DNA of 64,000 nt. It comes from Rebecca billardiae RCC1528. Lineage: Eukaryota; Protista; Haptophyta. Within the stretch, counting starts at the first letter, position 1. Each line of letters begins with the position of its first letter. The notes below the pieces were generated by a model. That model was not told the origin of the DNA. It saw only the letters and a program-made list of their open reading frames with translations, and ran no database searches. Made by a program: the position numbers and the translations under genes. Of the stretch, positions 46,248-61,879 are shown one piece after another. Where the stretch lies: the NCBI GenBank assembly GCA_965240325.2, contig OZ251224.1:2914001-2978000 (forward strand), read 5' to 3'.

Positions 46248-47270
46248 TCACTGCACCGCCTCTGGCAAGGCTGTTCGCAGCTTATGATAGGCCGCGCCGT
46301 TCAGCCGCGTGGCCTCGTCGACCAGCGTGCTCCCGAGCGCTTCGTGCAGCGCGCGCAAGAGCTTGGCGTTGGCCGTCTTCACGTCGGCCTTGCCCTCGTC
46401 CAGCAGCCTCACCGCGACCTGGGCCGTGCGGTGGCGGCGCACGCTCGGGGCCGGGGCGTGAGCGCGCGCGCGCAGCGCTCGTCGCGCACCCGCGACGCGC
46501 GCACGCGCAGCGGACGGGGCGCGGGGAGCGCGGCGCTTGGGCGCGCACCGGCACGACGTGCTTGATGAGCTGCGGGCGCGTCGCCTTGCTCGATGGCACC
46601 ATCTCTGCGAGCAGCTCCAACAAGGGCGCGCGCACGCGCGGTGAGCCGTAGTGCGCGACGTTGGCCATCGGCGGCCACAAGGTCGCCGGATCGGTCACCG
46701 ACTCGAGCGCGGCGAACGCCTCCTCCGTGGCGCCGCGCACCGCGGCGTTGCCCGACGCGAGCGCGTTGCACAGCGCGGGCACAATCACGTTGCACGCCGC
46801 CGAGTCGGCCGCCACGTCGGAGAGGCTGCCCACGACGCGAGGGAGCGCCTGCAGCGCGCACACGCTCACCTGCGCAGCAGCGCGCGCGCGCGCTCCGCGC
46901 AGGGCGTCAGCCCGCGGCGGGCGGGCCTCGAGGGAGGGCGCGCGGGGCGCGAGGGTTGCGCGCCGCGCGCGCGCGCGCGCCTTTGAGTTCCCGTCGGCGA
47001 TGCGCTGCGCGAGCAGGTCGAAGGTGGCGACCGCGTGCTTGGAGCGGCGCACGGAGGCCGTCTTAGCGCACACCAGCCCGACGAGCTGCTCGATGCCGTC
47101 CGTGCGCTGCCGCCAGTCGGGCGCGCCGATCGCGGCCGAGATCGCCTTGAACTCGTCGTCGAGCTCGCGGTTGAGCGGGTTGACCGCTGGCGCGCCGCCG
47201 CCCCGGCCGGAGCCGCGCACCGAGGTGGCGGACGCGCGCAGCGATGCGCCGGCGGCGGCGCACCCCGCCG

Positions 47271-47301
<31 letters not shown>

Positions 47302-47390
47302 GCCGCCGCCGCCGCCGCCGCCAAACGAGCCCGTGGCGCCGGCTGCGCCGTACGAGCCCTGGCGCTCGAGCGCGATGCCGTCGACGCCGA

Positions 47391-47421
<31 letters not shown>

Positions 47422-48334
47422 GACCAGCGCGTTCGTGCGGCTGTCGAGCCGCAGCAGCGCGCCCTCCGCGCCCTTGGACGCCGAGAGGGCCGTGTCCATC
47501 ACCGCGCGCACGCGCTTGGCGTCCGCCTCGCCGAGCGCGCGCTGCATGGTGCGCTGCAGCGCGCGCTCGGCGTCGGCGCCGTGCTGCTGCGCGACGTGCG
47601 CGAGCGCGCCGAGCGCGGCCTTCGCCGCCGCGCGCGTCTCCGCCGCGCCCTCGCCGAGGTAGCCCGAGAGCGCGGGCAGCAGCCGCTCGAGCTGCGGGCT
47701 GGTCAGCGCGCGCTCGCCCTGGTGCACGACCGCGCGCGTGACGCACTGCGCGCACTTGGTGCGCGAGGCGGCGGCCTTGGCGGCGGCGCTGGTGGTGAGC
47801 AGCGCGCCGAGCACCTTCGCGTCCGACGCGTTCGTCACCATCGCGACGAGCGCGCGCCACGCCTCCTCCGCGAGGAACTGGTCGTTGCCCGCCGCGCGCT
47901 TGATGAGCGGGGGCGCCAGCAGCTCGAGTTCAGAGTCCACGCCACGCGCGGCGCACGCAAAGAGCTCGCGGCAGCACGCGACGGCGTTGCGCGAGATGGC
48001 GGAGCGGAGCGACTCGACCATGGCGCACAGCTGGCGCACGAACGCGCGCAGCCGGTCCTTGTCCCCGAGCAGCGCCTGCCGCGCGTGGTGCACCGCGATG
48101 CGCCGCAGCGTGTTGAGGGCGTCGTGCTGCGCCATCCAGTCCTCCGAGTGGCACCGCTCGAGCGCGCCGCGCAGCTCGGCGTCGACGCTGCGGCCGGGGA
48201 AGGGCTCGAGCGCGTCCGTGCTCAGCTCGGCCACGCGCCGCGTCGACGAGCCCTTCACCTCGATGCCCGGGCTGCCCTGCTCGCCCCCGCCGCCGCCGCC
48301 GCCCGCGTACGCGCGGCGCGAAGGGCTGCCGCCC

Positions 48335-48375
<41 letters not shown>

Positions 48376-48489
48376 CAGGCCGCCGCCGCCGGCGCCGCCG
48401 CCGGCGCCGAGGCCGCTGGCCGCTCGGCCGCCCGCGCCGCCGCCCATCCGCAGCGGCGGGCGCGCGGCGCCCCCGTACAACGGGCTGCC

Positions 48490-48520
<31 letters not shown>

Positions 48521-49150
48521 GGCGCGCTGCCGCGCACGCCGCTCTCCGCGCCCGCGCGCAACGAGGACGCGCCGTGCGGCCGCGCGCCCGCGGGGCGGCG
48601 CGAGCCCCTCACCGCCGCGGGCGCCGAGCCGGCGATCCCGCGCGGCACGTCCGCATGCCCCATCCCGCCCTCCGCGCCGCCCAGCCCCTCCGCCGCCGAG
48701 CCCCCCGGCCCGTACGCCTCCTGCAGGTACTCCTCGTAGCTGCCCTGCCGCAGCGGACGGATCGGCCGCTCGTCGTCCGGCACGGAGGAGGGGGAGGCGT
48801 GGCCGCCGCCGAGCGCGCCGGGGCCGGGGCCGGCGCCGCCGACGCCGCACGACGCGGAGTGCAGCGCGCCGCCGTCCTCGGGCGACGCGACCCCCACCCA
48901 CGAGCCGCGCGCCTCGAGCGCGCCCGCGGCGCGCGCGGGCGCGCCCGGCGCGGCCGCGCCGCCGTCCGCCGGCGCGGGCCGCCGCGCCGCCGCGGGCCGC
49001 GCCGAGCTGTTGACGCGCGGCCCGCGCTGCGCGCGGCCGAAGGGCGCGGACGCCGAGCGCTGCGCGGACGACGACGGCTCGTCGCCCTCGTCGCCGCCCT
49101 CGGCGATGGGCGCCCTCGCGCCCGCCTCGGCGGCGGCCGGCCGCGCGGCC

Positions 49151-49182
<32 letters not shown>

Positions 49183-51220
49183 CTCGCCCGCCGCGGCGGC
49201 GGCGGCGGCGGCCGCGGCCGCGGCGCGGCGCTGCAGGCTGCTGCCCACCGAGTCGCCGCCGAGCTGCTCGCTGAACGTGACGGACGGCTGGCCGAACGCG
49301 CTGCTCGCGCCGTTCGAGCCGCGCCGCTTGCTGCCCGACGCCTTGAGCAGCTTGATGCGCTCGCCCACGCCCGCGCCGCCGCCCGCGCCGCCGCCGCCGT
49401 CCGCGTCCGCGCCGCCGCCGTCCGCGGCGCTCGGCAGCCAGAGCGACACCTTGCTCCTCGAGGGCGAGCCCGGCGAGGGCGGCACGGCGTACGCGGTGTG
49501 CGCGGGCGGGCCCGGCGCCGTCATGGACGACGCGCGCGCGCGGGCGTCCGCGGGCGGCGCGGCTGCGGCGGCGTCTGCGCCAAAGTAGCGCTCCAGCACG
49601 TCCACGCCACGGCCGCTCAGCGCGGGCGCGGAGAGCGCCGCGACGGGGCGCTCGCTCAGCGACTGCTGGGTGTGCGTCAGGTCGATCGGCGCGGGCACGG
49701 GCACGCTGCGCCCCGCGCCGGCCGCGCCGCGCTCGTCGCGCGCGCCGCTGTTGTTGCGCCGCGCCGCGCGCGCGCCCGCGCCCGCCGCCGCGTCCGAGCC
49801 GCGCCGGCGGCCGGCGGGCGCGTCCGCTCCCGCGCCCTCCGGCTCGAGCAGCGGCGCGTGCTGCGCGGTGAGGTCCTCCGCGGGCATGCTCGCGCGCTGC
49901 GCGCGCGGCCGCCCGCCGTCCGCGCGCGTCTGCGCGCGCGGCGCCGGCGGCTCGCGGTCCCACGGCAGCGCGTTCGCCGTGGTGCGCGTGCGGCCCGCGC
50001 CCGCCGACGTCGACGAGCGCAGCCGCCGCCCCGACGGCGCGCCGCCCGCGGCCGCGTCGCCGAGCAGGTGCACGAGCTCGGCGGAGGCGGAGACGGAGAG
50101 CCCGGCGGCGGGCGTGAACGAGGCGCACGGCGACGGCGCGGTCGGCGTCGTGCCGTTGCTCGAGCTGCGGTAGCTGCAGCACGCGAGGCCGTCGGCCGCG
50201 CACGCGCCGCCGCCGCCGTTGGGCGCGGCGCCGCCCTCGGCGCCGCCCAGCTGCAGCCGGAGGGCGGGCTCGGGCGAGGCGGCGGCGGCGGGCAGGCCGC
50301 CCTGCGCGGGCGGCTGCGCCATCGCGTGCAGGCTCACGTGCTCCACCAGCCCCTCCGCGCTCAGCGTGGGCAGCTTGCCGCCGAGCAGCTGCGCGCGCTC
50401 GCGCACGAGCGCGAGCTTGTCGTCCGCGGCGTGCAGCGCGCGCAGCTGCGCGCTGAACGCGCCGTCGCCGACGCGCACGCGCACGACGGCGAGCGCCTCG
50501 AGCGCGACGGCGCGCACCTTGGCCTTCGCGTCCGCGAGCAGCTCCACCAGCGCGGCCGTCACCACCGCGCTGCCGCCGTGCCCCGCGGCCAGCTCGGCGG
50601 CGGCGGGGCGCAGCAGCAGCAGCTGGATGAGCGCGTTGGCGGTGTGCTCGCGCACGTGCGCGTTGCGGTGCGACAGCTGCGCGCACAGCGCGCCGACGTA
50701 CTCGGGCAGCCGCGCGATCTTTGCCGCGCGGTACATGAGCGCCATGTTCTGCTGCCGGATCACGATCTTGTTGTCGCCGAACTTGTCCAGCAGCTTGGGC
50801 ACGAGCGCGGGCAGGTGGCCCACCATCGCCTCAGCCGACGCGTCGAGCAGCGTCGCGAGGATCTGCAGCGTCGTCAGCGAGATCTTGAAGTTGAGGTCGT
50901 CGAGCAGCGAGCGGAGGAGCTCGACGAGCGGGCCCAGCCCGGCGGCGAGCCGCGCGCCGTCCGCCGCGGGCCCCGCGCTCAGCGCGCGCACCAGCGCCTC
51001 GAGCTCCTCGATCGCCTCCGCGCGCACCTTCCAGTTGCCCGTGTCGCGCAGCTGCTCGTACAGACGCGCGGACACGAGCGGCAGGCCCGCGCCGCCGACG
51101 CCGGCGCCGCCGGGCGGGCCGGGCGACGGCGCGGCGGCGGCGGCGGCGGCGGCGCGCCCGTTCGGCAGCGCGGTCGGAGCGCCGCGCGCCGCCGGCCGCG
51201 CGCCGCGCGCTGCCGCCGCC

Positions 51221-51252
<32 letters not shown>

Positions 51253-52365
51253 CCACGCGCTGCGCTCCGCGGACGCGCCGCCGCGCGGGCTCGCGGCCGT
51301 CGGCGAGGCCGCGTCCGCCGCGGGGTGCTCGTCGGAGCCCTCCTCGCCGCTCTCGCTGCCCGAGTCCTCGTCCACCTCCTCGCCCTCCTCGTCCTCCTCC
51401 TCGTCCGAGTCTGACTCGAAGTCGTCCTCGGGCTCGGGCTCGGGCTCGGGCTCGGCCTCCTCGTCCTCGTCCTCGTCCACCTCGCCCGCCTCGTCGCTCG
51501 AGCCCGAGCTGGCGGACGAGGAGGCGCTGTTGCCCACGGTGTCGTCGTCGGGTTGGCGCCGGTCGGTGCCCGCCGGCCCGGCCGCCGCGCGGCCCCCGGC
51601 CGCCAGCTGCGCGCCGCCGTCGTCGTCGCCGTCGTCGCCGCGGCCGCCGCCGCCGTGCATCGCGAGCAGCTCGAGGACGTCGTGCACGCGCTGCGAGCCC
51701 GGCGCGGGCAGCGGCGGGAGCGACGCGCGCGCGTCTGGGTCGTAGTGCGCGTCGAAGAGAGCGCGCCGGCTCGGGCTCAGCCGGGAGGCCTCGCGGGAGA
51801 AGTCGGCGCACAGCTGGCTCATGTGCCCAAGCGCCTGCGCGTGCGGCGTCGCGCGCGCGGGTGCGGTGGCGCCGCGCGTGTTGGGCGCGCGAGTGAGCAG
51901 GCGAGGCCGCCGCCGCGCGCGTGGGCGGCGCGGGGCTCGACAGACGGGTCGCTCGCCCGTACCTTGCCGGCGATGGCCGACACATCCTCGTCATCGTCGT
52001 GCAGCAGGTCGACCACGCGCGGCAGCAGCGGCGCGCACGCCGGCGCCGCGCCGCTCGCGCCGGACGACGACGCGAGGAGCGCAAGCGCGGCTTCGAGTGC
52101 CGCCTCGCGCACGTGTGCCTGCTCGGGGAGCGGGTACGTATGCCGCGCGGGAGGCGCCCTGAGCGCCGGGCCGGCGCGCGGCGGCATGCCCCACACGAGC
52201 AGCGCGCGGAGCAGGGGGCGGGGGCGCCGGAGCGCGCGGGAGCGCGCGCGCGCGCGCGCAGCGCCGCGCGGATGCGGCACTCACCGCCGAGTGCGTCAAG
52301 CCCCGCTCTGCTAGCAGATCGAGCGAGCGCTCGCTACTGCGCGGCGCAACCCCCGCTGGGTCCAT
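46248..52365 (-). CDS. TOGARAM1: TOG-array ciliary protein (crescerin/TOGARAM/CHE-12); exons 52365-52285, 52118-51963, 51834-46981, 46869-46549, 46418-46248
   Basis: TOG signatures NWKVRAEAIEEL, LDDLNFKI, GDNKIVIR, SEDW, SLRSAISRNA, DWRQR and D.NSKV, separated by a long low-complexity linker. Four introns, one of them GC-AG. Confidence 0.82.
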
Positions 52366-52912
52366 CGCGGCGCCCGTGCGGCGCCGCGAGGCGGCTCCAC
52401 CGTGCAAGAGTGTAGCCCCGCCCCCGACTCACGCTGCAACCGGGTTGCAGCAGATACCCGCACACTATTATCATCAGCAGTATGGATCGCGGGAGCGGCC
52501 AATATGCCTGATGGCCGAACGCACCCGCTCTCATACAGGAATGTGAGCGTCTTTGTGATGACCTAGAAATCATCTGTAGTTATCATCGTGAGTACACGTA
52601 CAGGATGGTTACACCCGCCTATCTAGGTAGTTAAATGGGTCCGGCGACCCTCGCCGGACTCGCATCACAATAGAATGATCGGAAAGATTAAAAGTGTGCT
52701 GCGCTAAACAGCGAAAATAAAACTTTTGGACGGCCAAAGTTTATAGCGCGCAACAGCAAGGTCCTGGTGCGCCGTGCGTGCGCAGCAGGGCTGCTCCCGC
52801 CTCCCGGGCTGCTTTTGGCAAGGCGGCGAGCAGCTTGCGCCCCGCTGGAGGCGGCCGGTGGTGACGCCGGCGAGCTCTGCCCTCGGGCTCCGAGCGAGTG
52901 CGCGCAGCCGGT

Positions 52913-55900
52913 ATGCTGAAGGCGCTCAAGCTCTCCAAGTGGAAGAACAGGAGCAAACACACTCGCGAGTCGGGCGTCCACGCCGAGTTCACCAGCACCG
53001 ACGCGGACGGCAGCCCCGACGGACCCTCGTTCCTTCCACTGAGTGGCGAGGCTGACACGGACAATGCTGCACCGGCGTCGGCTAGCATCGCGCCGCCACA
53101 GGTGAACGTCCCGACGCTGAAGCTGCCCGCGCCAAAGGGGAAAGGGCAGCGGCGCAAGTCTCAGCTGGCCGCGCCCGCCGCTCCGGGTGCTCCCAGCTCG
53201 GAGCCCGATGCGGTGGGCGCGGCTGCGAAGAAGGGCAAAGGGCTGCGGCGCATGTCCCAGCTGCCCGCGCCCAGGGGCGCTCATGGTGCTCCCAGCTCGG
53301 AGCCGGATGATGCGGGCACAGCTGCGAAGAAGGGCAACAAGTCGCAGCTGGCTGCGCCAGGTGCCTCGGCTGCTCCGCCGAGCTCGGAGCCGGAGGCTGC
53401 GAGCGCGCCCGCTGCCGCGCCGCCTGGCGAGCTGCCGCTACCCGCTGGGCCACCGGCAGCGGCCGAGAAGCTGCCGCTGCCCACCGGGCCGGCAGCGGCC
53501 GCGGCCGCGAGCACGCCCGCGCCGCCAGCTGGCCCCTCTGCGGCCGCGGCCAAGCCGCCGCCCCCCTTTGGCTTCCCGATTCCGGCCAAGTTCGCCGAGA
53601 TCCGGCCCCCGCCTGGTGCCGGGGCTGGTGACGCGCCCGCGGCTGTCGGGTGCGAGCTCGCGGATCCGGCCGAGCGAGCAGTCAGCCTGCGCCAGCTCAG
53701 GCGGATCCTGGCGGCCGCGCGCGCACTGGGCGCCGCGGAGCGCTGGAAGGCGGTCGGCCGAGGAGGCCGCGCGGTGTCGGCTCGCACGATGTGCGCGCAC
53801 GACATCGTCGAGCACCTGGTGCTGCCGGCGACGCAGCACCGCGGCTGCTCCCTCGTCGAGCAGGTGGCGGCGGGTGCCCAGCGCACGCGGTGGCTGGTCA
53901 GCCACAGCTGGAATCAGCCGCTCATGGACGTGCTGCGGGGTGTCACGGCGCATGCGCGCGACCGCGCGATCGACGAGGACGCCCCGGTCTACTGGCTGGC
54001 GTGGTGCGCGGTGCGCCTCAAGGCGGGCTCGCCAGAGCTGCGCACCCCGCCAGGCAGCGCACAGGACGTGGCGCATCGTGCGCGGGTGGCGAGCGAGGGC
54101 ACGCTGACGGTGCTCGACTCGATCGGTCACACCCTGGTCAGCTCGCCGTGGGTGGCCTTCGAGGCGTACTGCGCGCTGACCGACACCGGCGGGCGGCACC
54201 TGCACGACGTGTACGTGGCGGCGCCGAGCACCGAGCGCTCCGAGGCGGCGAGATCGGGCGTCCTGCAGCAGACGGTGATGGCTGCGGCGCTCGCGCTTAC
54301 GCAGGCGCTGCCTGGCGCGGCGCAGGCTGGCGGCAATGCCGCCGACGCGCACGCCGCGCGACTCGTGCGGCCAGATCCGCGCCCCGCGGGCTCCCTCGAC
54401 GGGCTGGGCGCAGCCGACGCGCGCGCCCTCCGCCCTTCGGACGCGGCGTCCAGCCGGACGCGCAGCGAGCTGCGCTTCCAGGACGCGCTCATGAAGCAAA
54501 CGCGCGAGTTCACCTTCTCGGAGGCCGCCTCTGCCGCGGTGGAAGCGTCGCCCCGGGTCGTGGGTGCCGCGGAACTCGTCGCGACTGATGCGTACACCAT
54601 CCTGCAGTCGCTCGGAGGCGCGGACGCCGTGCATGCGCTGGAGAAGGTGATCCGCGCGCGGTTCGGGGTCGTGCCCGGCCTGAGCCGCGCGGTGGCAGCC
54701 GGCGATTCCGCCGAGCTCCGGGCCCAGCTGGCGCTCCTCAGCGACGCCGAGATGCGCATGGCTGCGCTCACGGTGACGTTCGCGCAGCTGCCACCTGTCG
54801 GCGCCGTCGCCGCGCTGGCGCACGCACTCCCGCCAAACCTCGTGCGCCTCCAGCTGATGCACGTGACGGGCACGCGGGAGCTTGCTCCCGCGGTGGCGTC
54901 GCTCGCGGCGCGCGGGCAGCTACGCCACCTCGCGCTCTGCGCGTGCCAGCTGGACGACGAGGACATCTCAGCGCTATGCCTCGTGCACCGCACGAGCTCG
55001 CCCATCTCCCACCTGCGCAGCATCGACTTGCGCGAGAATGCGTTTGGTGACACCGGCGCGCAGGCGCTGGCTACCGCGCTCGCACATGTCGCGTCCGGGG
55101 AGCAGAGCGCGCTGACGTTCTTGGATCTGTCACAGAACCCCATGCTGGGAGACGTCGGCCTGTCAGCGCTCGCAGGCGCCATTTCGGCTGGTGGCGGCGC
55201 ACCCGGCGGTGCCGGGCAGGGTGCAGCGCGCCTGGCTGAGCTCCGCATCCTCAACGTCGAGCACTGCCCGCGCATTGGCGACGCGGGGGCGACCGCTCTG
55301 GGCGACGCGCTCGGCGCGAGCACGTCGCTCAAAGAGCTGCGCATGGCTCGCACGGGCGTCGGCGCGGAAGGCGCCCGCGCTCTTGCCGTCGGGATTGGAG
55401 CCCACACGACGCTCGAACTGCTCAGGCTCTCGCGGACGCGCCAAATCGGCGACGTGGGTGCAGCGTCCATCGCGCGCTCGCTGACAAGCACGAGCGCACT
55501 CGCACACCTGGACTTGGCAGATGCGGGCATTGGTGCCGAGGGCGCGCGCGCCATTGCCGAGGCGCTCAAGTCAGGCTCGGCGCTTCGCTTGCTCGACCTC
55601 AGTGCAAACTCGCTCGGCGCCAAGGGCGGCGCGGCCCTCGCCAGCGGCCTCAGGCAAAACTCGTCGCTCGAGCAGCTTCGCCTTGCTCACTGCAGGCTCG
55701 GCGACGCCGGCGCGGAAGCGCTTGGCCCCGCTGTGGGAAGCAGCTGCCTGCGCTTACTCAACTTGGCCGTGAACGACATTGGCGATGCTGGTACGTCGGC
55801 GTTCCTGGGAGGGCTGGTGGAGGCCGCACCGGCGGCGAAGAAGCCCGCGTCAAGCGACGCGTCGGAGGCACCGGCGAAGCATGTGCAGAAGACGCTCGCC

Positions 55901-56590
55901 AGGCTCTTTTTGGACGGGAATGCCATTGGGGACGACGGCGCGACAGCTGTTGGCAAGCACGCGCGCTCAATGCAGGCCCTGCGCGTCCTCAGCCTCGGGG
56001 ACAATCGCATCGGAGGCCCAGGTGCCTCGGAACTGGCCCGTGGCGTCCGCGCCACACGGCTGGAGAGTCTCGAGCTCGCGGATAACGCTCTCGGAGGGCG
56101 CGGCGCGGCCGCCCTTGCCGAAGCGGGCATCGGGCGCACGCGATCTCTCCGCGATCTCGGCCTCGCCGGCAACACCCTCGGCGACGAAGGCGCTGTTGCC
56201 ATCGCGAAGGCCGTTCGCGGCGGACGATTGCTCGCCGTCAGGCTCGCAGACAACCGCATCGGCACCGCGGGAGCCGCCGCCCTGGGAAAGGCCATCGCCG
56301 ACCCAGTGTGCGTGCTCGAGCGACTCGACCTGGGAAACAACCTTATCGACGACGCTGGCGCCGCTGCTGTCGGCAAGGGGCTCCAGACGAACGCCCGCTT
56401 GCTTGCGCTGGATCTGGGGTACAATGGCCACCTCGGTGACGACGGTGCCAAGGCCCTGAGTGAGGCCCTGCGAGGCAACAGTACGCTCACACGTCTAGAC
56501 GTAGCGCATGGCGGCATAAGCCCCTCCGGAGCCGACGCGTTGGACAAGGCGCTGCACTACAATGCGGCGCTCGAGACACTCGTGACGTGA
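52913..56590 (+). CDS. LRR protein (ribonuclease-inhibitor/NLRC3-like repeats) with N-terminal tandem repeats and a degenerate HET-like middle domain
   Basis: Many LxxLxLxxNxIGDxGAxAL repeats from ~54800. WLVSHSW...YWLAWCA segment. Three N-terminal SQL..P...PSSEP repeats. No P-loop/NACHT motif seen. Confidence 0.85.
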   Translation: MLKALKLSKWKNRSKHTRESGVHAEFTSTDADGSPDGPSFLPLSGEADTDNAAPASASIAPPQVNVPTLKLPAPKGKGQRRKSQLAAPAAPGAPSSEPDAVGAAAKKGKGLRRMSQLPAPRGAHGAPSSEPDDAGTAAKKGNKSQLAAPGASAAPPSSEPEAASAPAAAPPGELPLPAGPPAAAEKLPLPTGPAAAAAASTPAPPAGPSAAAAKPPPPFGFPIPAKFAEIRPPPGAGAGDAPAAVGCELADPAERAVSLRQLRRILAAARALGAAERWKAVGRGGRAVSARTMCAHDIVEHLVLPATQHRGCSLVEQVAAGAQRTRWLVSHSWNQPLMDVLRGVTAHARDRAIDEDAPVYWLAWCAVRLKAGSPELRTPPGSAQDVAHRARVASEGTLTVLDSIGHTLVSSPWVAFEAYCALTDTGGRHLHDVYVAAPSTERSEAARSGVLQQTVMAAALALTQALPGAAQAGGNAADAHAARLVRPDPRPAGSLDGLGAADARALRPSDAASSRTRSELRFQDALMKQTREFTFSEAASAAVEASPRVVGAAELVATDAYTILQSLGGADAVHALEKVIRARFGVVPGLSRAVAAGDSAELRAQLALLSDAEMRMAALTVTFAQLPPVGAVAALAHALPPNLVRLQLMHVTGTRELAPAVASLAARGQLRHLALCACQLDDEDISALCLVHRTSSPISHLRSIDLRENAFGDTGAQALATALAHVASGEQSALTFLDLSQNPMLGDVGLSALAGAISAGGGAPGGAGQGAARLAELRILNVEHCPRIGDAGATALGDALGASTSLKELRMARTGVGAEGARALAVGIGAHTTLELLRLSRTRQIGDVGAASIARSLTSTSALAHLDLADAGIGAEGARAIAEALKSGSALRLLDLSANSLGAKGGAALASGLRQNSSLEQLRLAHCRLGDAGAEALGPAVGSSCLRLLNLAVNDIGDAGTSAFLGGLVEAAPAAKKPASSDASEAPAKHVQKTLARLFLDGNAIGDDGATAVGKHARSMQALRVLSLGDNRIGGPGASELARGVRATRLESLELADNALGGRGAAALAEAGIGRTRSLRDLGLAGNTLGDEGAVAIAKAVRGGRLLAVRLADNRIGTAGAAALGKAIADPVCVLERLDLGNNLIDDAGAAAVGKGLQTNARLLALDLGYNGHLGDDGAKALSEALRGNSTLTRLDVAHGGISPSGADALDKALHYNAALETLVT

Positions 56591-57305
56591 GCGCCGCGCA
56601 GGAGCGCAGCGCAGCAAATCTACATCAATTGCCGTGTTCTGCTGAGGCTACATACATGTGTGTCTTGAACCCAGCGCGCCCGCCCTGGCGGCGGCCACGG
56701 CGTGCCATGGCCACGGCCTTAGCCTGACCTGAATAAGACACGTGTATCAACTGTCTGAAAAGGCCAGTCATTAAGTAGCTGGGATTTGACTATAGTAGAG
56801 TGCTTGTAGTCCTGGCGTGGTAGCGGGTAGTCTGGTGGCGTAGCGGTAAAACCGAAAACGCTTCGTCATCTTACCATCCGTCCCACTGACCAGATCACGA
56901 ACAGACGCCCACGTGCGTGACGTTGGTACATATGTGCGCCGTTGGAAAAGCATTCACCGCTACGAGGTCGTGCGCTCTGCTACACGGCAAAGCGCGGCTG
57001 ATGGCGACTTCGCCGCCGCATGGGCGGGCGAGTCGCCGCTGCCCGCAAAAGACATACGTCATAGACGAGAAAACGGGCAGATGGCGCGTCGCGCACGTCA
57101 TGGAACTTGGTTGTGACCCTCGCCAGACTCAGCGCGCGCGGCGAAGCCACGTCCATGGGCACCATGCGTGCAGGCGGCGTCACGGCGAAGCCGCCTGGCC
57201 GCGGCGACCGGCCTCGCGCGTCCTTGCGGCGCCGCGAAAGGGCACCCATCCCGGCTGCGAATTTGGTAAGATGACGAAGCGTTTTACCGCTGCGCCACCA
57301 GAGTC

Positions 57306-57713
57306 GACTCTGGTGGCGCAGCGGTAAAACGCTTCGTCATCTTACCATAACGTACTGGGTCTCATCCGCGCGCGGTGCCAATTTGCCGCTGCAACTCTGA
57401 GCCACACCCCCCTGGGTGTGGGGCCGGTCGCCTGCCGGGTACGGTTTGTTCTCGCGGTTGGCTCCGCGTCCCATGCCCCTCTGGCGGGGCCCCCTGGGAG
57501 GGAATCCGGGGAGAGCCGACCCTGGGAGCCGCCCGGGGGCCGGACATTCGGAAATGTGTCCGGAATCCCTGGTCGTGGGCGACCCTCCTGCGAGACACGA
57601 AAGCCGCAGCGGCTGCTGTGAAAGAGCGAAAGAAGCGCACCGCAGCGGATTCGAACCCAGGACGTCACGGTAAGATGACGAAGCGTTTTAAAAACCGCTG
57701 CGCCACCAGAGTC
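57306..57713 (-). mobile_element. tRNA-derived SINE-like unit bounded by inverted arms (minus-strand copy)
   Basis: Reverse complement of 57714-58121 with 2 mismatches. Carries A and B boxes on the minus strand. Confidence 0.6.
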
Positions 57714-58121
57714 GACTCTGGTGGCGCAGCGGTTTTTAAAACGCTTCGTCATCTTACGATGACGTCCTGGGTTCGAATCCGCTGCGGTGCGCTTCTTTCG
57801 CTCTTTCACAGCAGCCGCTGCGGCTTTCGTGTCTCGCAGGAGGGTCGCCCACGACCAGGGATTCCGGACACATTTCCGAATGTCCGGCCCCCGGGCGGCT
57901 CCCAGGGTCGGCTCTCCCCGGATTCCCTCCCAGGGGGCCCCGCCAGAGGGGCATGGGACGCGGAGCCAACCGCGAGAACAAACCGTACCCGGCAGGCGAC
58001 CGGCCCCACACCCAGGGGGGTGTGGCTCAGAGTTGCAGCGGCAAATTGGCACCGCGCGCGGATGAGACCCAGTACGTTATGGTAAGATGACGAAGCGTTT
58101 TACCGCTGCGCCACCAGAGTC
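57714..58121 (+). mobile_element. tRNA-derived SINE-like unit bounded by inverted arms (plus-strand copy)
   Basis: A box TGGCGCAGCGG (57722-57732), hairpin CGTCATC-TTAC-GATGACG, B box GGTTCGAATCC (57770-57780), ~300-bp structured body, then the reverse-complement arm. Confidence 0.6.
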
Positions 58122-58969
58122 GACTCTGGTGGCGCAGCGGTAAAACGCTTCGTCATCTTACCAGAATTCGACTTGTGCGTCGGGAGACGTGCGCCAGCTA
58201 GCCAACGCGCACGCCCCGCGAGCAGCACGGGGCGCGCACACGGCGCCCGCCGCACCGGCCGAGCGTGCGTCGAAAGCGGCACAGCGGGAGAGGGCCCCGA
58301 TCCAAAGGCGGATTCGCCGGGGGCGAGCCCCCGTGGTATTTTCGCAGCCTGGGTCATTACTTAGCGTCTTTGTCAAGCTGGCGCAACGCTCCGGGAGTCT
58401 GGTAAGATGACGAAGCATTTCACCGCTGCGCTCGCAGGAGGGTCGCCCACGAGCGGGGATTCCGGACACACTTCCGAATGTCCGGCCCCCGGGCGGCTCC
58501 CAGGGTCGGCTCACCCCGGATTTCCTCCCAGGGGGCCCCGCCAGAGGGGCATGGGACGCGGGGCCAACCGCGAGAACAAACCGTACCCGGCAGGCGGCCG
58601 GCTCCATACCCAGAGGGGCGCGGCTCATGCAGAGTTGCAGCGGCAGATTGGCAAAACGCGCGGATGAGACCCAGTACGTTCTGGTAAGATGACGAAGCGT
58701 TTTACCGCTGCGCCACCAGAGTCGACTCTGGTGGCGCAGCGGTAAAACGCTTCGTCATCTGACCAGAGTCGTAACATATGGCCATCGTATTCGTCACTGC
58801 GGGCAGGCGAGCCAAGAGGCGCGTTGAGCCAGTCACGGCTGCTCTGTAGTATCCAGGCTGATCGCCAGCCCGAATCGCAAGCCGCGCGGCGCCATTCGAA
58901 TCCCCAGCGCGAGCACCTGGCACGTCCGTTCTTTGTGAGTTCTCCGCTGGTGCACACCTCGAATGTGAT

Positions 58970-59110: not shown

Positions 59111-60253
59111 TCAGAATGGATCCAGGCGGGCAACGAAGATCTCATTCAACACCAGCCGCTGTGCTTCTCCGCGGAGACGGATCAGGCTGCCTTGGCTCGC
59201 TCGCACACGGTGGCTCAAAATGGCGTCCGGACTGGGCGTGGGAATGGGCGTGGGAATGGGCTATCGGGGCGTCGTCGACGGTGTTGGCGAAAAAAGGCGG
59301 CGGGGGCCTTGAAGGCGGCGGCCCACTCAGCGTGTTGCCGTCAAGATACCTGAAAAGCGCACGGCGTGGAGGCCACGTGCGTATGCGCAGTCGTAAGTAG
59401 TGTGGGGGCGGGTCGAGCGTAGCGCGCGTGGCGCGCCACTCTCGGCGGTGCCGCACACGCGCCAGCATCACGTGCAAGATGCAGCAGCAGCCCGCACTAG
59501 CGCGCGCTGCACAGCAACAGGGGTCAGTCAATGGTAAGATGACGAAGCGTTTTACCGCTGCGCCACCAGAGTCGACTCTGGTGGCGCAGCGGTAAAACGC
59601 TTCGTCATCTGACCACTTTCCGCACTTTGTCATCTTACGAGAGTGCGTCGTTGTTGCTCCTGCATCGCGTGGAGGCCACTCATGTACGCACCGTGGAAGC
59701 TGGCTGTGCGCGACGCGCCGCGCGCGCCTGCCCCACACTCGCCAGCGCCGTGCGCGTCACAGCAACACGCGCGCGCACAGATCGGTGCACGCACGTGGTA
59801 GGGGCTGTGGCGAGGCAGGAGGTGAACGCAGAGTCTTCAGCGAGTGCGCACGCCCTCCGATGGGCTTGCGCGCGAGTTGCGTGATAATAGGCTTAGCAGC
59901 CCAGGGGGCGGCGGCGGCCGAACTCAAGGGCGCGGTACTTTCATCGGACGACCAGCTGGCACTGGCGCAAGGCCTGCACCTCGGCGCATCAAGGGCGGCG
60001 TCGATCGAGGCACGACGACGGTGCGCTGGCGGGGCTATCATCATGACGACATCTGCGGCCGCAGCGGACGAGATGAAGCCGAGCGCACGGGCGGTGTTTC
60101 GTCGCCAGCCGCTTGCACTCATCCGCCGCCCGGGCGTCACTCTCCGCCCCATCCCAGCGACGCCGAGCGCTGCTTACATCATCTGGCTCTACTGCTGTGA
60201 CTGGCTGGCTGCCAAAGTGCCGGGTTCCCGGGTCTGGTGACAGATGATGACTA

Positions 60254-61879
60254 CTACTGAGAGCGTCTGAGGCGCTTAGCATCCCTCATCACTGCCGCGC
60301 GCCGCTCAAGTTTGCGCAGGCGTGTGCCCAGCTGCCCAGCGAAGCGGAGCATGTTGCCCGCCGTGATGGCCGCGATCCAGCGCTGCGCGCGCGCCATCTC
60401 GTCGCGCACCCGCTGCCGGTTCGCACTCCCGCGCAGCCTGCTCAGCACGCCCGTCAGCTCGTCCGCAAGCTCGGAGACTGGCCGCGTGCGGAAGCGTGGC
60501 GTGAGCTCGACCGCCCACTCCGGGTGTCCGATGTCCTCGGCGAAGGTGCGGACCTTCTCGTGCGTGACGAGCGAGATGGTGGGCACGCCGAGGCCGAACG
60601 GGATCATCACGCCGTGCCCGCGCATCGACGCTGCCACCGCCACCTTCCGGTAGTACTGCAGCACCGTGCCCCACGTGTGCACCAGCTCGCCGCGCTTCAG
60701 ATTGAACGAGATCACTTCGTACGGAAATGGGTACTCGCTCGCGCGCCGGCGGAGGAAATCGAGGAGCGGCGTGTCGCTGGCGCCTTGCATGACGAGGTGG
60801 ATGGTCCAATGCTTCGCGTGCGCGCGCATCAGCCACGTCGCGAGCTGCGTCAGCACCGCCTCTGCCTGCGCCTCCGAGCCAAGTCGCAGCACAAGCTGGT
60901 CATCTGCAATGTTGACAGAGAGAATGCGAGACAGGGCACCGTCTTGGCCTCGGCGTGGCGAGCTGGGCGCGAGGAGGCACGGCTGGAGCAGCGAGAGGAG
61001 CGTGGTCGCGCACGGCTGGTACGCCAGCCGCTCGCGCCAGGCCAGCCGCCCCGGCTGCTCGGCCTCCGCCGCCGCCGTCTCCGCGGCCGCCGCTGCCCGC
61101 CCCGAGCGCTCGATCGACACGAAGTGAGCGCTTACGCTGCGCAGGGAGTACGACTCGCGCAGGCCGACGGTGCGCGCGGGGTGCTGGGCGAGCGCCTCGA
61201 GGGAGCGCAGGTACGCGGCCCAGGGCCCGGGCGCGGGCCGCTCCTGATCCCGGAAGCCATTCCAGCCCACGCCGAACATGTACAACGGCGGCGCCAGCGA
61301 GCGCAGGTGCTCGCTGTGCACCTGCCACTGCCAGCCTGAGATGTTCTGACGAGAGTGCACGTTCGCCGGATAGAAGAGGCCGCCGCCACCCACGACGACG
61401 GCAGCGGCGCGGCGGTTCGCTTCGTGGATGTCCTCGGCCCGGCTCACCGCCCGCGCCTCGTGCTCCACCCAGCGCGGCGTGACGCCGAGGAAGAATTCAA
61501 ACGCCATCTGCGTTGCACGTGGGAGCACAAAGTCGCCTGCGTTGGACTGGCTGCGCGCGGTGAGCGCGTAGTGGACGAAGGTGGGCGTGCGTGCGTGCGC
61601 TCGTAGCCCGTCGCATGCCTGGCGCCACGGTGCCAGCTCCTGCGCCTGCCGCCGCAGCGACTCGTTGCGCACGAGGTCGCACAACGACGCCGGCTGCCAG
61701 CCGCCGGCGCCACGGCAGCCACGGCGGCGGCTCGTGCGCGGCGCGTGCCGCTCGAGCAGCGCTTCGATGGCGGCGTCGGGCCGCTCGTACGCACGCAGCG
61801 CGTCGGGCAGCGAGCCGAGGCTGCAGGGGACGCATGCGAGCAGCGCCACGGCGGTAGCGCGGCGCATGGGAGTCGCCAT
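60254..61879 (-). CDS. Polysaccharide pyruvyltransferase family protein with signal peptide, intronless
   Basis: NAGD, VVVGGGGLF, FGVG, GLRESYS, SMRGHG.M...LGVP.I.L....KV motifs. ATG at 61879 (alternative 61867). Confidence 0.8.
   Translation of the reverse strand: MATPMRRATAVALLACVPCSLGSLPDALRAYERPDAAIEALLERHAPRTSRRRGCRGAGGWQPASLCDLVRNESLRRQAQELAPWRQACDGLRAHARTPTFVHYALTARSQSNAGDFVLPRATQMAFEFFLGVTPRWVEHEARAVSRAEDIHEANRRAAAVVVGGGGLFYPANVHSRQNISGWQWQVHSEHLRSLAPPLYMFGVGWNGFRDQERPAPGPWAAYLRSLEALAQHPARTVGLRESYSLRSVSAHFVSIERSGRAAAAAETAAAEAEQPGRLAWRERLAYQPCATTLLSLLQPCLLAPSSPRRGQDGALSRILSVNIADDQLVLRLGSEAQAEAVLTQLATWLMRAHAKHWTIHLVMQGASDTPLLDFLRRRASEYPFPYEVISFNLKRGELVHTWGTVLQYYRKVAVAASMRGHGVMIPFGLGVPTISLVTHEKVRTFAEDIGHPEWAVELTPRFRTRPVSELADELTGVLSRLRGSANRQRVRDEMARAQRWIAAITAGNMLRFAGQLGTRLRKLERRAAVMRDAKRLRRSQ

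Follow-up and report, generated by a model that had tools for sequence, protein, structure and literature searches.

MITEs are small, non-coding elements bounded by terminal inverted repeats and flanked by target duplications of fixed length, which in the common superfamilies are TA (Tc1/mariner), 3 bp (PIF/Harbinger) or 8 bp (hAT). They occur as many near-identical copies, with clustered insertions, internal-deletion derivatives and empty paralogous sites. In tRNA-derived SINEs the head has A and B boxes spaced as in a tRNA and a cloverleaf that has decayed; an unrelated body and a downstream T-run terminator follow. Foldback (FB-type) elements have long inverted or palindromic ends that can account for nearly the whole element, and they can form head-to-head double copies; the ends of Drosophila FB are built of tandem subrepeats and its duplication is 9 bp. 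Integrase-type TG...CA elements (LTR elements and TRIMs, Ginger-type elements) are marked by those terminal dinucleotides and by duplications of about 5 bp. Apart from the named superfamily duplications and the particulars of Drosophila FB, these traits recur in the repeat family that we describe here from the haptophyte Rebecca billardiae; of known kinds, a MITE with foldback-like ends comes nearest.

The family also departs from each of these kinds. Unlike those of MITEs, its 42-nt ends can abut without internal sequence to give an 84-bp perfect palindrome, and its longer forms carry such a full palindrome at each end. The combination of a 5-bp duplication with TG...CA fits none of the common MITE superfamilies named above, the end and subterminal region are tRNA-like, and there is no partner transposase among 54 end matches. 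What separates the elements from tRNA-derived SINEs is that their terminal repeats are inverted, their duplication is fixed at 5 bp, neither an A-rich nor a LINE-derived tail is present, retroposed daughters are missing and most members lack a B box. Foldback elements differ in that each end here is a unique arm of 42 nt and the duplication measures 5 bp, and integrase-type elements in that there is here no primer-binding site, polypurine tract or coding partner and the repeats are inverted rather than purely direct. A literature search, which was not exhaustive, returned no description of a tRNA-like inverted MITE end, of terminal repeats with a tRNA origin, a Pol III-driven MITE or an algal foldback element with a 5-bp duplication.

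The locus lies in a 64,000-nt stretch of DNA (C5:2914001-2978000, hereafter the window) of a GC-rich assembly of 72 Mb in 41 contigs. We read positions 57714-57800 of the window as one inner inverted end, together with the ~35 nt of internal sequence that come next, belonging to a small, non-coding, MITE-like family of DNA transposons with palindromic ends, and give this reading a probability of roughly 0.65. The tRNA-like stretch thus named, consisting of the inner arm of a terminal palindrome and the first ~35 nt of the body, sits between an ORF with LRR repeats that ends at 56590 and an ORF that starts at 60254. It belongs to a 900-bp block composed in order of an 84-bp palindrome, a body, a 92-bp central palindrome, a second body and a second 84-bp palindrome (Table 1). 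The palindrome axis, at 57713/57714, is the exact centre of the block, and A box, T5 and B box are mirrored on the other strand. The two 450-nt halves are 99.6% complementary, have no spacer and mismatch only at two adjacent positions, 57668/57759 and 57669/57758. As a result of these mismatches the internal end reads CTTACGA in the right half and CTTACCG in the left, where the family consensus is CTTACCA; internal arms on contigs C21 and C19 also end in CGA.

Table 1. Features of the locus in window coordinates, with related insertions elsewhere in the genome
Feature	Position	Strand	Remarks
Degenerate single arm	56833-56876	+	GCGT...ACGC, 7-nt loop insertion
Target-site duplication, left copy	57259-57263		GAATT; site uninterrupted in C18 paralogue
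900-bp near-perfect palindrome (head-to-head double element copy)	57264-58163		TG...CA ends; duplication GAATT
Left terminal 84-bp palindrome	57264-57347		two 42-nt arms
Mirror tRNA-like stretch	57637-57712	-	covariance model 10.8 bits; host-tRNA profile 10.1 bits
B-box match, mirror	57647-57657	-
Left arm of central palindrome	57668-57713	-	mirror copy; internal end CCG, not CCA
A-box match, mirror	57695-57705	-
Right arm of central palindrome	57714-57759	+	inner inverted repeat, 42 nt + TTTT insertion; approximately tRNA-like positions 1-38
Full tRNA-like stretch	57715-57790	+	covariance model 15.2 bits; host-tRNA profile 9.3 bits
A-box match	57722-57732	+	TGGCGCAGCGG
T5 run between boxes	57733-57737	+	from TTTT insertion; missing in C15, C18 and C21 copies
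Anticodon-arm-like hairpin	57747-57764	+	CGTCATC-TTAC-GATGACG
B-box match	57770-57780	+	GGTTCGAATCC
Right terminal 84-bp palindrome	58080-58163		first arm has first T4 downstream of boxes, at 58098
Target-site duplication, right copy	58164-58168		GAATT
Duplication around deleted copy	58395-58399 and 58766-58770		GAGTC
Separate internally deleted copy of same element	58400-58765		no tRNA-like head; duplication GAGTC
Further 84-bp palindrome	59532-59615		without clear duplication
Full copy	C15		duplication AGCGA
Full copy	C21		duplication GTGTG
Truncated copy	C18		duplication TGGCG
Bare palindromes or remnants	C1, C11 (two), C38, C22		duplications GTGTG, CGAGG, CCCAG, CGCAC, CAGAT

Several neighbouring features were seen alongside. 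The upstream ORFs encode TOG/CLASP-type HEAT repeats (46282-51822, minus strand) and LRR_6 repeats (52898-56590, plus strand). The DNA that hosts the 900-bp block (56878-57258 and 58169-58394) is repetitive in its own right and has a paralogue on C18 (L008 1566-2185), which starts at an 84-bp palindrome; this host repeat may be another type of cargo bounded by the same ends. The palindrome at 59532-59615 recurs together with both its flanks 27 kb downstream (C5:3000659-3000741, L034), and the palindrome there lies within a larger duplicated segment.

A sequence-only reading of the window had listed an A box, a T run, a hairpin and a B box, all of which are present at the positions given in Table 1, but some of what it built on them needs correction. 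It saw a D-stem-like GCG...CGC in each arm; every arm has GCGC...ACGC, in which 3 of 4 pairs form. The arm that it singled out for a perfect GCGT/ACGC does carry that stem, but because of its 7-nt loop insertion this copy is not more tRNA-like overall. Both arms of the central palindrome continue into a B box as described, but the 7-bp hairpin stem belongs to the right arm only, the left arm, with CTTACCG, forming 5 bp. All other arms were said to stop at the anticodon-like loop, which is true of outer arms, because the element truly ends there, but not of the inner arms that adjoin the same body on C15, C18 and C21, which run on to the B box. Finally, the extra TTTTT between the boxes is present as a T5 run, but the insertion itself is TTTT (4 nt).

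The mobile unit has the outer ends TGGTAAG...CTTACCA (TGGTAAGATGACG...), with a 5-bp target duplication outside TG...CA. Its smallest form is an 84-bp palindrome alone, made of two 42-nt inverted ends that abut; the longer form consists of a palindrome, a body of ~320 bp and a palindrome, and the window block is a head-to-head double of this longer form, inserted as one unit. Ten insertions have duplications of this fixed 5-bp length (Table 1), and two paralogous empty sites support insertion: window positions 58374-58392 (caagcTGGCGcaacgctcc) are the empty site for the C18 insertion, and the 900-bp insertion in the window has its empty counterpart in the C18 paralogue. A hairpin-ended unit running from palindrome centre to palindrome centre was rejected as the mobile unit, since every target duplication sits outside the outer TG...CA ends. 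The 84-bp palindrome transposes by itself without a B box, and remnants of 33 and 42 bp retain both ends and the duplication.

Insertions are locally clustered. The 40-mer core of the palindrome occurs at 18 genomic places and the 16-nt terminal sequence, allowing at most 1 mismatch, has 54 matches genome-wide; 21 of 40 arms are identical, which indicates that the family is young. Elements range from 84 to 900 bp, and their only ORFs are mirror images across the palindrome that have no Pfam match. No autonomous partner was found, all 54 end matches (16-mer, at most 1 mismatch) lying in short elements without genes, and metagenomes, scanned for the arm as well as the B-box region, gave 0 matches. 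Because the duplication has a fixed length of 5 bp, the TG...CA ends are inverted, there is no tail and palindromes lacking a B box transpose, the element does not count as a SINE: it moves as DNA, and the defining features of SINE mobility are absent. As far as mobility is concerned, the same observations do not support the SINE/TIR hybrid that the sequence-only reading had put forward.

We propose that a DDE-type transposase or integrase acting in trans would recognise the 42-nt ends, cut with a 5-nt stagger and need the terminal CA. The sole grounds for this class of enzyme are the TG...CA ends and how long the duplication is; staggered cuts of 5 nt together with a terminal CA are the pattern of the retroviral-integrase-like group. 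The simplest origin of the double copy would be that a terminal palindrome underwent fold-back duplication at its centre; since TTTT is found in both halves, its insertion would have come first. The CCA end that is now internal has one change per half, a different one in each, and the outer, functional ends are intact; speculatively, the internal changes might blunt cutting at the internal ends. The boxes are dispensable for transposition, and mobility does not need Pol III activity. In the window copies the T5 between the boxes would be expected to stop Pol III ~20 nt from the predicted start.

The 11-mer TGGCGCAGCGG is an A box present in each 42-nt arm, but exact A and B boxes are found together in five copies only, two in the window and one each on C15, C18 and C21. 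The last three lack the T insertion, and their boxes stand 44 nt apart, exactly the length from T8 to the B box in host class-I tRNAs, which bears out the tRNA-like spacing that had been proposed; the 4 nt of TTTT widen this to 48 nt in the window copies. The five heads differ by at most 2 substitutions plus the 4-nt T insertion, and because they are near-identical, their common retention of the B box is uninformative on selection. The sole diverged copy, on C19 (87% identity over the body), has its head deleted. Conservation of A and B boxes across copies, on which the earlier proposal depended, thus comes down to five near-identical heads and a single diverged copy without one.

At the far end of each body the continuation is present as an inverted, decayed copy, CTTACCATAACGTACTGGGTCTCATCC..., with GGGTCTCATCC where the B box would be, and inverted-repeat similarity reaches ~75 nt at both body ends; the ancestral inverted repeat was therefore ~75 nt long and took in the whole tRNA-like stretch. 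Three older arms have a better A box, TGGCGTAGTGG (also given as TGGCGTAG(T/C)GG), and a perfect GCGT/ACGC D stem; one arm has a GCGC/GCGC D stem. The A-run of the arm (GGTAAAACGC), equivalent in position to the D loop, is a hot spot for indels (window 57733 and 56852; L008 1540; L006 1541), with TTTT, ACCGAAA, AAA and GT as insertion variants among copies. Beside the terminal palindrome of the C21 and C19 copies, a 40-nt arm unit (CTCTGG...CTTAC[G/C]A) is tandemly doubled (L011 1521-1602 and L010 1376-1457, respectively).

The whole 72-Mb genome was searched for the loose box pattern TRGYNNANNGG-N25-45-GGTTCGANTCC, with reversed patterns as controls. The 15 matches are the five element copies and 10 true tRNAs, and the reversed controls gave 0 and 0. 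By a rough hand estimate from base composition, ~0.9 chance matches per genome are expected for this loose pattern, and ~0.03 once the box is tightened to TRGCNNAGNGG and its spacing kept near canonical, as is the case here. On C29 and C34, another repeat containing TGGCGCAGCGG...GGGTCGAATC was rejected as a relative: it is an unrelated 660-bp stretch with the boxes there by chance. Its two copies (C29:1156178-1156837, L086; C34:366074-366733, L087) are 100% identical over 660 bp, which indicates a segmental duplication or an uncollapsed haplotype.

The stretch has tRNA promoter boxes at tRNA spacing, yet it is not a tRNA by any model. ARAGORN made 0 tRNA calls in the window or at the C15, C18 and C21 loci, and Rfam, run on 5 kb and on 121 nt, gave no tRNA match at E <= 10 and nothing at the RF00005 gathering score of 29 bits; at permissive thresholds only microRNA-hairpin models matched, because of the palindrome. 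With a covariance model built from 19 nuclear tRNAs of the host genome, the head scores 15.4 bits, where real tRNAs score 74-75 bits and an unrelated, non-tRNA, GC-rich stretch (L015, C37, 1092-1165) reaches 16.5 bits, so the score of the head is background. The C37 stretch is also a warning about the background of structure models in this genome. The covariance similarity to tRNAs that the sequence-only reading had called for is accordingly absent; of its proposal that a tRNA half serves as the inverted repeat, what stands is that the arm aligns with the 5' part of a tRNA-like sequence starting at the axis.

The structural evidence goes the same way. The acceptor stem is missing, as are 3 of 5 T-stem pairs. 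Folded alone, the head pairs its A-box region with CCGCTGCGG just past the B box and forms no cloverleaf (-28.9 kcal/mol, z = -2.2, for L007 on C15, 1522-1597); CCGCTGCGG is a third partial inverted copy of the arm. Over 28 distinct arms, covariation in the D stem is no greater than in shuffles. What the head has kept are the A and B boxes, their spacing, and pairing in the D arm and the anticodon arm.

Tests on primary sequence point, with moderate strength, in the other direction. We fetched 27 nuclear tRNA genes, a partial sample of the host set, and built a profile HMM from 26 host tRNAs; two small contigs rich in tRNA genes are organelle-like. Against this profile the head scores 17.0 bits, with E = 4.3e-4 for a search of 110 kb, and the alignment spans tRNA positions 4-62, although over the ~220 genome-equivalents at which the author puts the whole scan, a 17-bit match is expected somewhere by chance. 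The best unrelated match in the same 110 kb is 4.7 bits, and random sequence of matched composition, 72 Mb generated by a third-order Markov model of local DNA, has its maximum at 14.4 bits. The match runs unbroken from 4 to 62, stops exactly at the end of the B box and takes in T8, A14, the GG of the D loop, U33, the purine at 37 and GTC of the variable loop. In pairwise comparison the best score against a host tRNA is 17, compared with 7.8 +/- 1.9 for shuffles, and lies within the range of 11-29 seen between different host tRNAs. Individual arms, scored against the profile with nhmmer as 44-nt sequences, gave no match. From these sequence comparisons it seems somewhat probable, by a narrow balance, that the inner arm and the start of the body descend from a tRNA, or from a tRNA-type promoter module, cut after position 62. 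Neither the A-box pattern nor the pairwise scores identified a parent among the partly sampled host tRNAs. tRNA-Trp and initiator tRNA-Met, the only ones with TGGCGCA, were rejected as parents, as they show no match elsewhere.

The alternative that survives best is chance resemblance, in which the arm would have been shaped only by binding of the transposase and the B-box-like 11-mer in the body would be a coincidence turned up by a very large scan. Background scores from the covariance model, empty Rfam and ARAGORN results, the lack of D-stem covariation and of an identifiable parent tRNA all agree with this, as does the expectation, on the rough composition estimate, of about one loose box match per genome; moreover, all copies stem from one founding event. 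Against it are the 17.0 bits with the host-tRNA profile, above the 14.4-bit maximum of 72 Mb of random sequence, and the fact that the unbroken 4-62 match, including the variable-loop GTC, U33 and purine 37, starts at the palindrome axis. The three older arms, with their better A box (TGGCGTAGTGG) and perfect GCGT/ACGC D stem, also speak against coincidence. We regard chance as doubtful, though it deserves to be taken seriously.

A second alternative, the view of the sequence-only reading, has the head serve as a working internal Pol III promoter, with TFIIIC on the A and B boxes, making the family a true SINE/TIR hybrid. Transcription would start near the axis, pass through the ~320-bp body and stop at the distal TTTT, yielding a panhandle RNA of ~385 nt that might be, for example, a source of small RNA or a cofactor of the element. 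The consensus boxes at exact host tRNA spacing on C15, C18 and C21 suit such a role, and boxes kept intact while acceptor and T stems are gone form the pattern expected if only the promoter had been retained. In the C15 and C21 copies the sense strand is free of T4 up to offset 381, which lies in the distal arm (GCGTTTTACC), and the hypothetical 385-nt RNA is predicted to fold into a panhandle at -211 kcal/mol (z = -8.6). In the window too, the next sense T4 lies in the distal inverted arm, where, as the sequence-only reading had anticipated, a read-through RNA would stop and fold into a panhandle.

However, the B box is present in only five near-identical copies, whose retention shows no selection, the only diverged copy deleted its head, and the B box has decayed at the far end of each body. 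Most family members have transposed without a B box, the window copies are interrupted by T5 between the boxes, and the genome holds no SINE-like daughter copies. On balance a working promoter, and with it a head that behaves like a Pol III gene, appears unlikely. Less probable still, in our view, is the fuller proposition of a cut-and-paste transposon that made its inverted end out of a tRNA or SINE head and in which that end would still work as an internal Pol III promoter. If it were true, each full copy would make a ~385-nt panhandle RNA, which could serve, for example, in small-RNA control of the family or in TFIIIC marking, and the element would be a real hybrid of SINE promoter logic and DNA-level transposition.

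Far less credible is a miniature LTR-type (TRIM-like) retroelement, in which the 84-bp palindromes would be direct terminal repeats and the tRNA-like stretch would be tied to priming. Integrase-mediated insertion typically leaves TG...CA ends and a 5-bp duplication, a palindrome is a direct and an inverted repeat at once, and the bare palindromes with duplications resemble solo LTRs. But the left flank of the body, TGACGTCCTGGGTTCGAATCC, is tRNA-sense rather than complementary to a tRNA 3' end and has no TGG start, there is no polypurine tract at the right repeat (right flank ...GACCCAGTACGTTA), the 33- and 42-bp remnants, in which both ends persist, resemble what deletion within a DNA transposon would leave, and the A box of the arm occurs in no host tRNA of the sampled set. 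That the central palindrome, and hence both central tRNA-like copies, is a fold-back artefact of assembly can be set aside almost entirely: spacerless 450-nt arms of 99.6% complementarity do have the known shape of a long-read assembly artefact, but GAATT is cleanly duplicated within a repeat that runs on uninterrupted in the C18 paralogue; this and the two adjacent, asymmetric substitutions in the internal CCA end argue against one, the single-copy form exists at three other loci, and the block lies 2.97 Mb into a 4.4-Mb contig.

The MITE-like family with palindromic ends is of practical value as a clean new repeat family for genome annotation, defined by its palindromic ends, TG...CA and 5-bp duplication. 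It also shows, as a worked example, that a sequence with perfect A and B boxes need be neither a tRNA nor a SINE. If the likeness to tRNA does reflect descent, a DNA transposon would have recruited a tRNA-type module into its inverted end, and an element that was recently mobile would carry a potential site for TFIIIC/Pol III.
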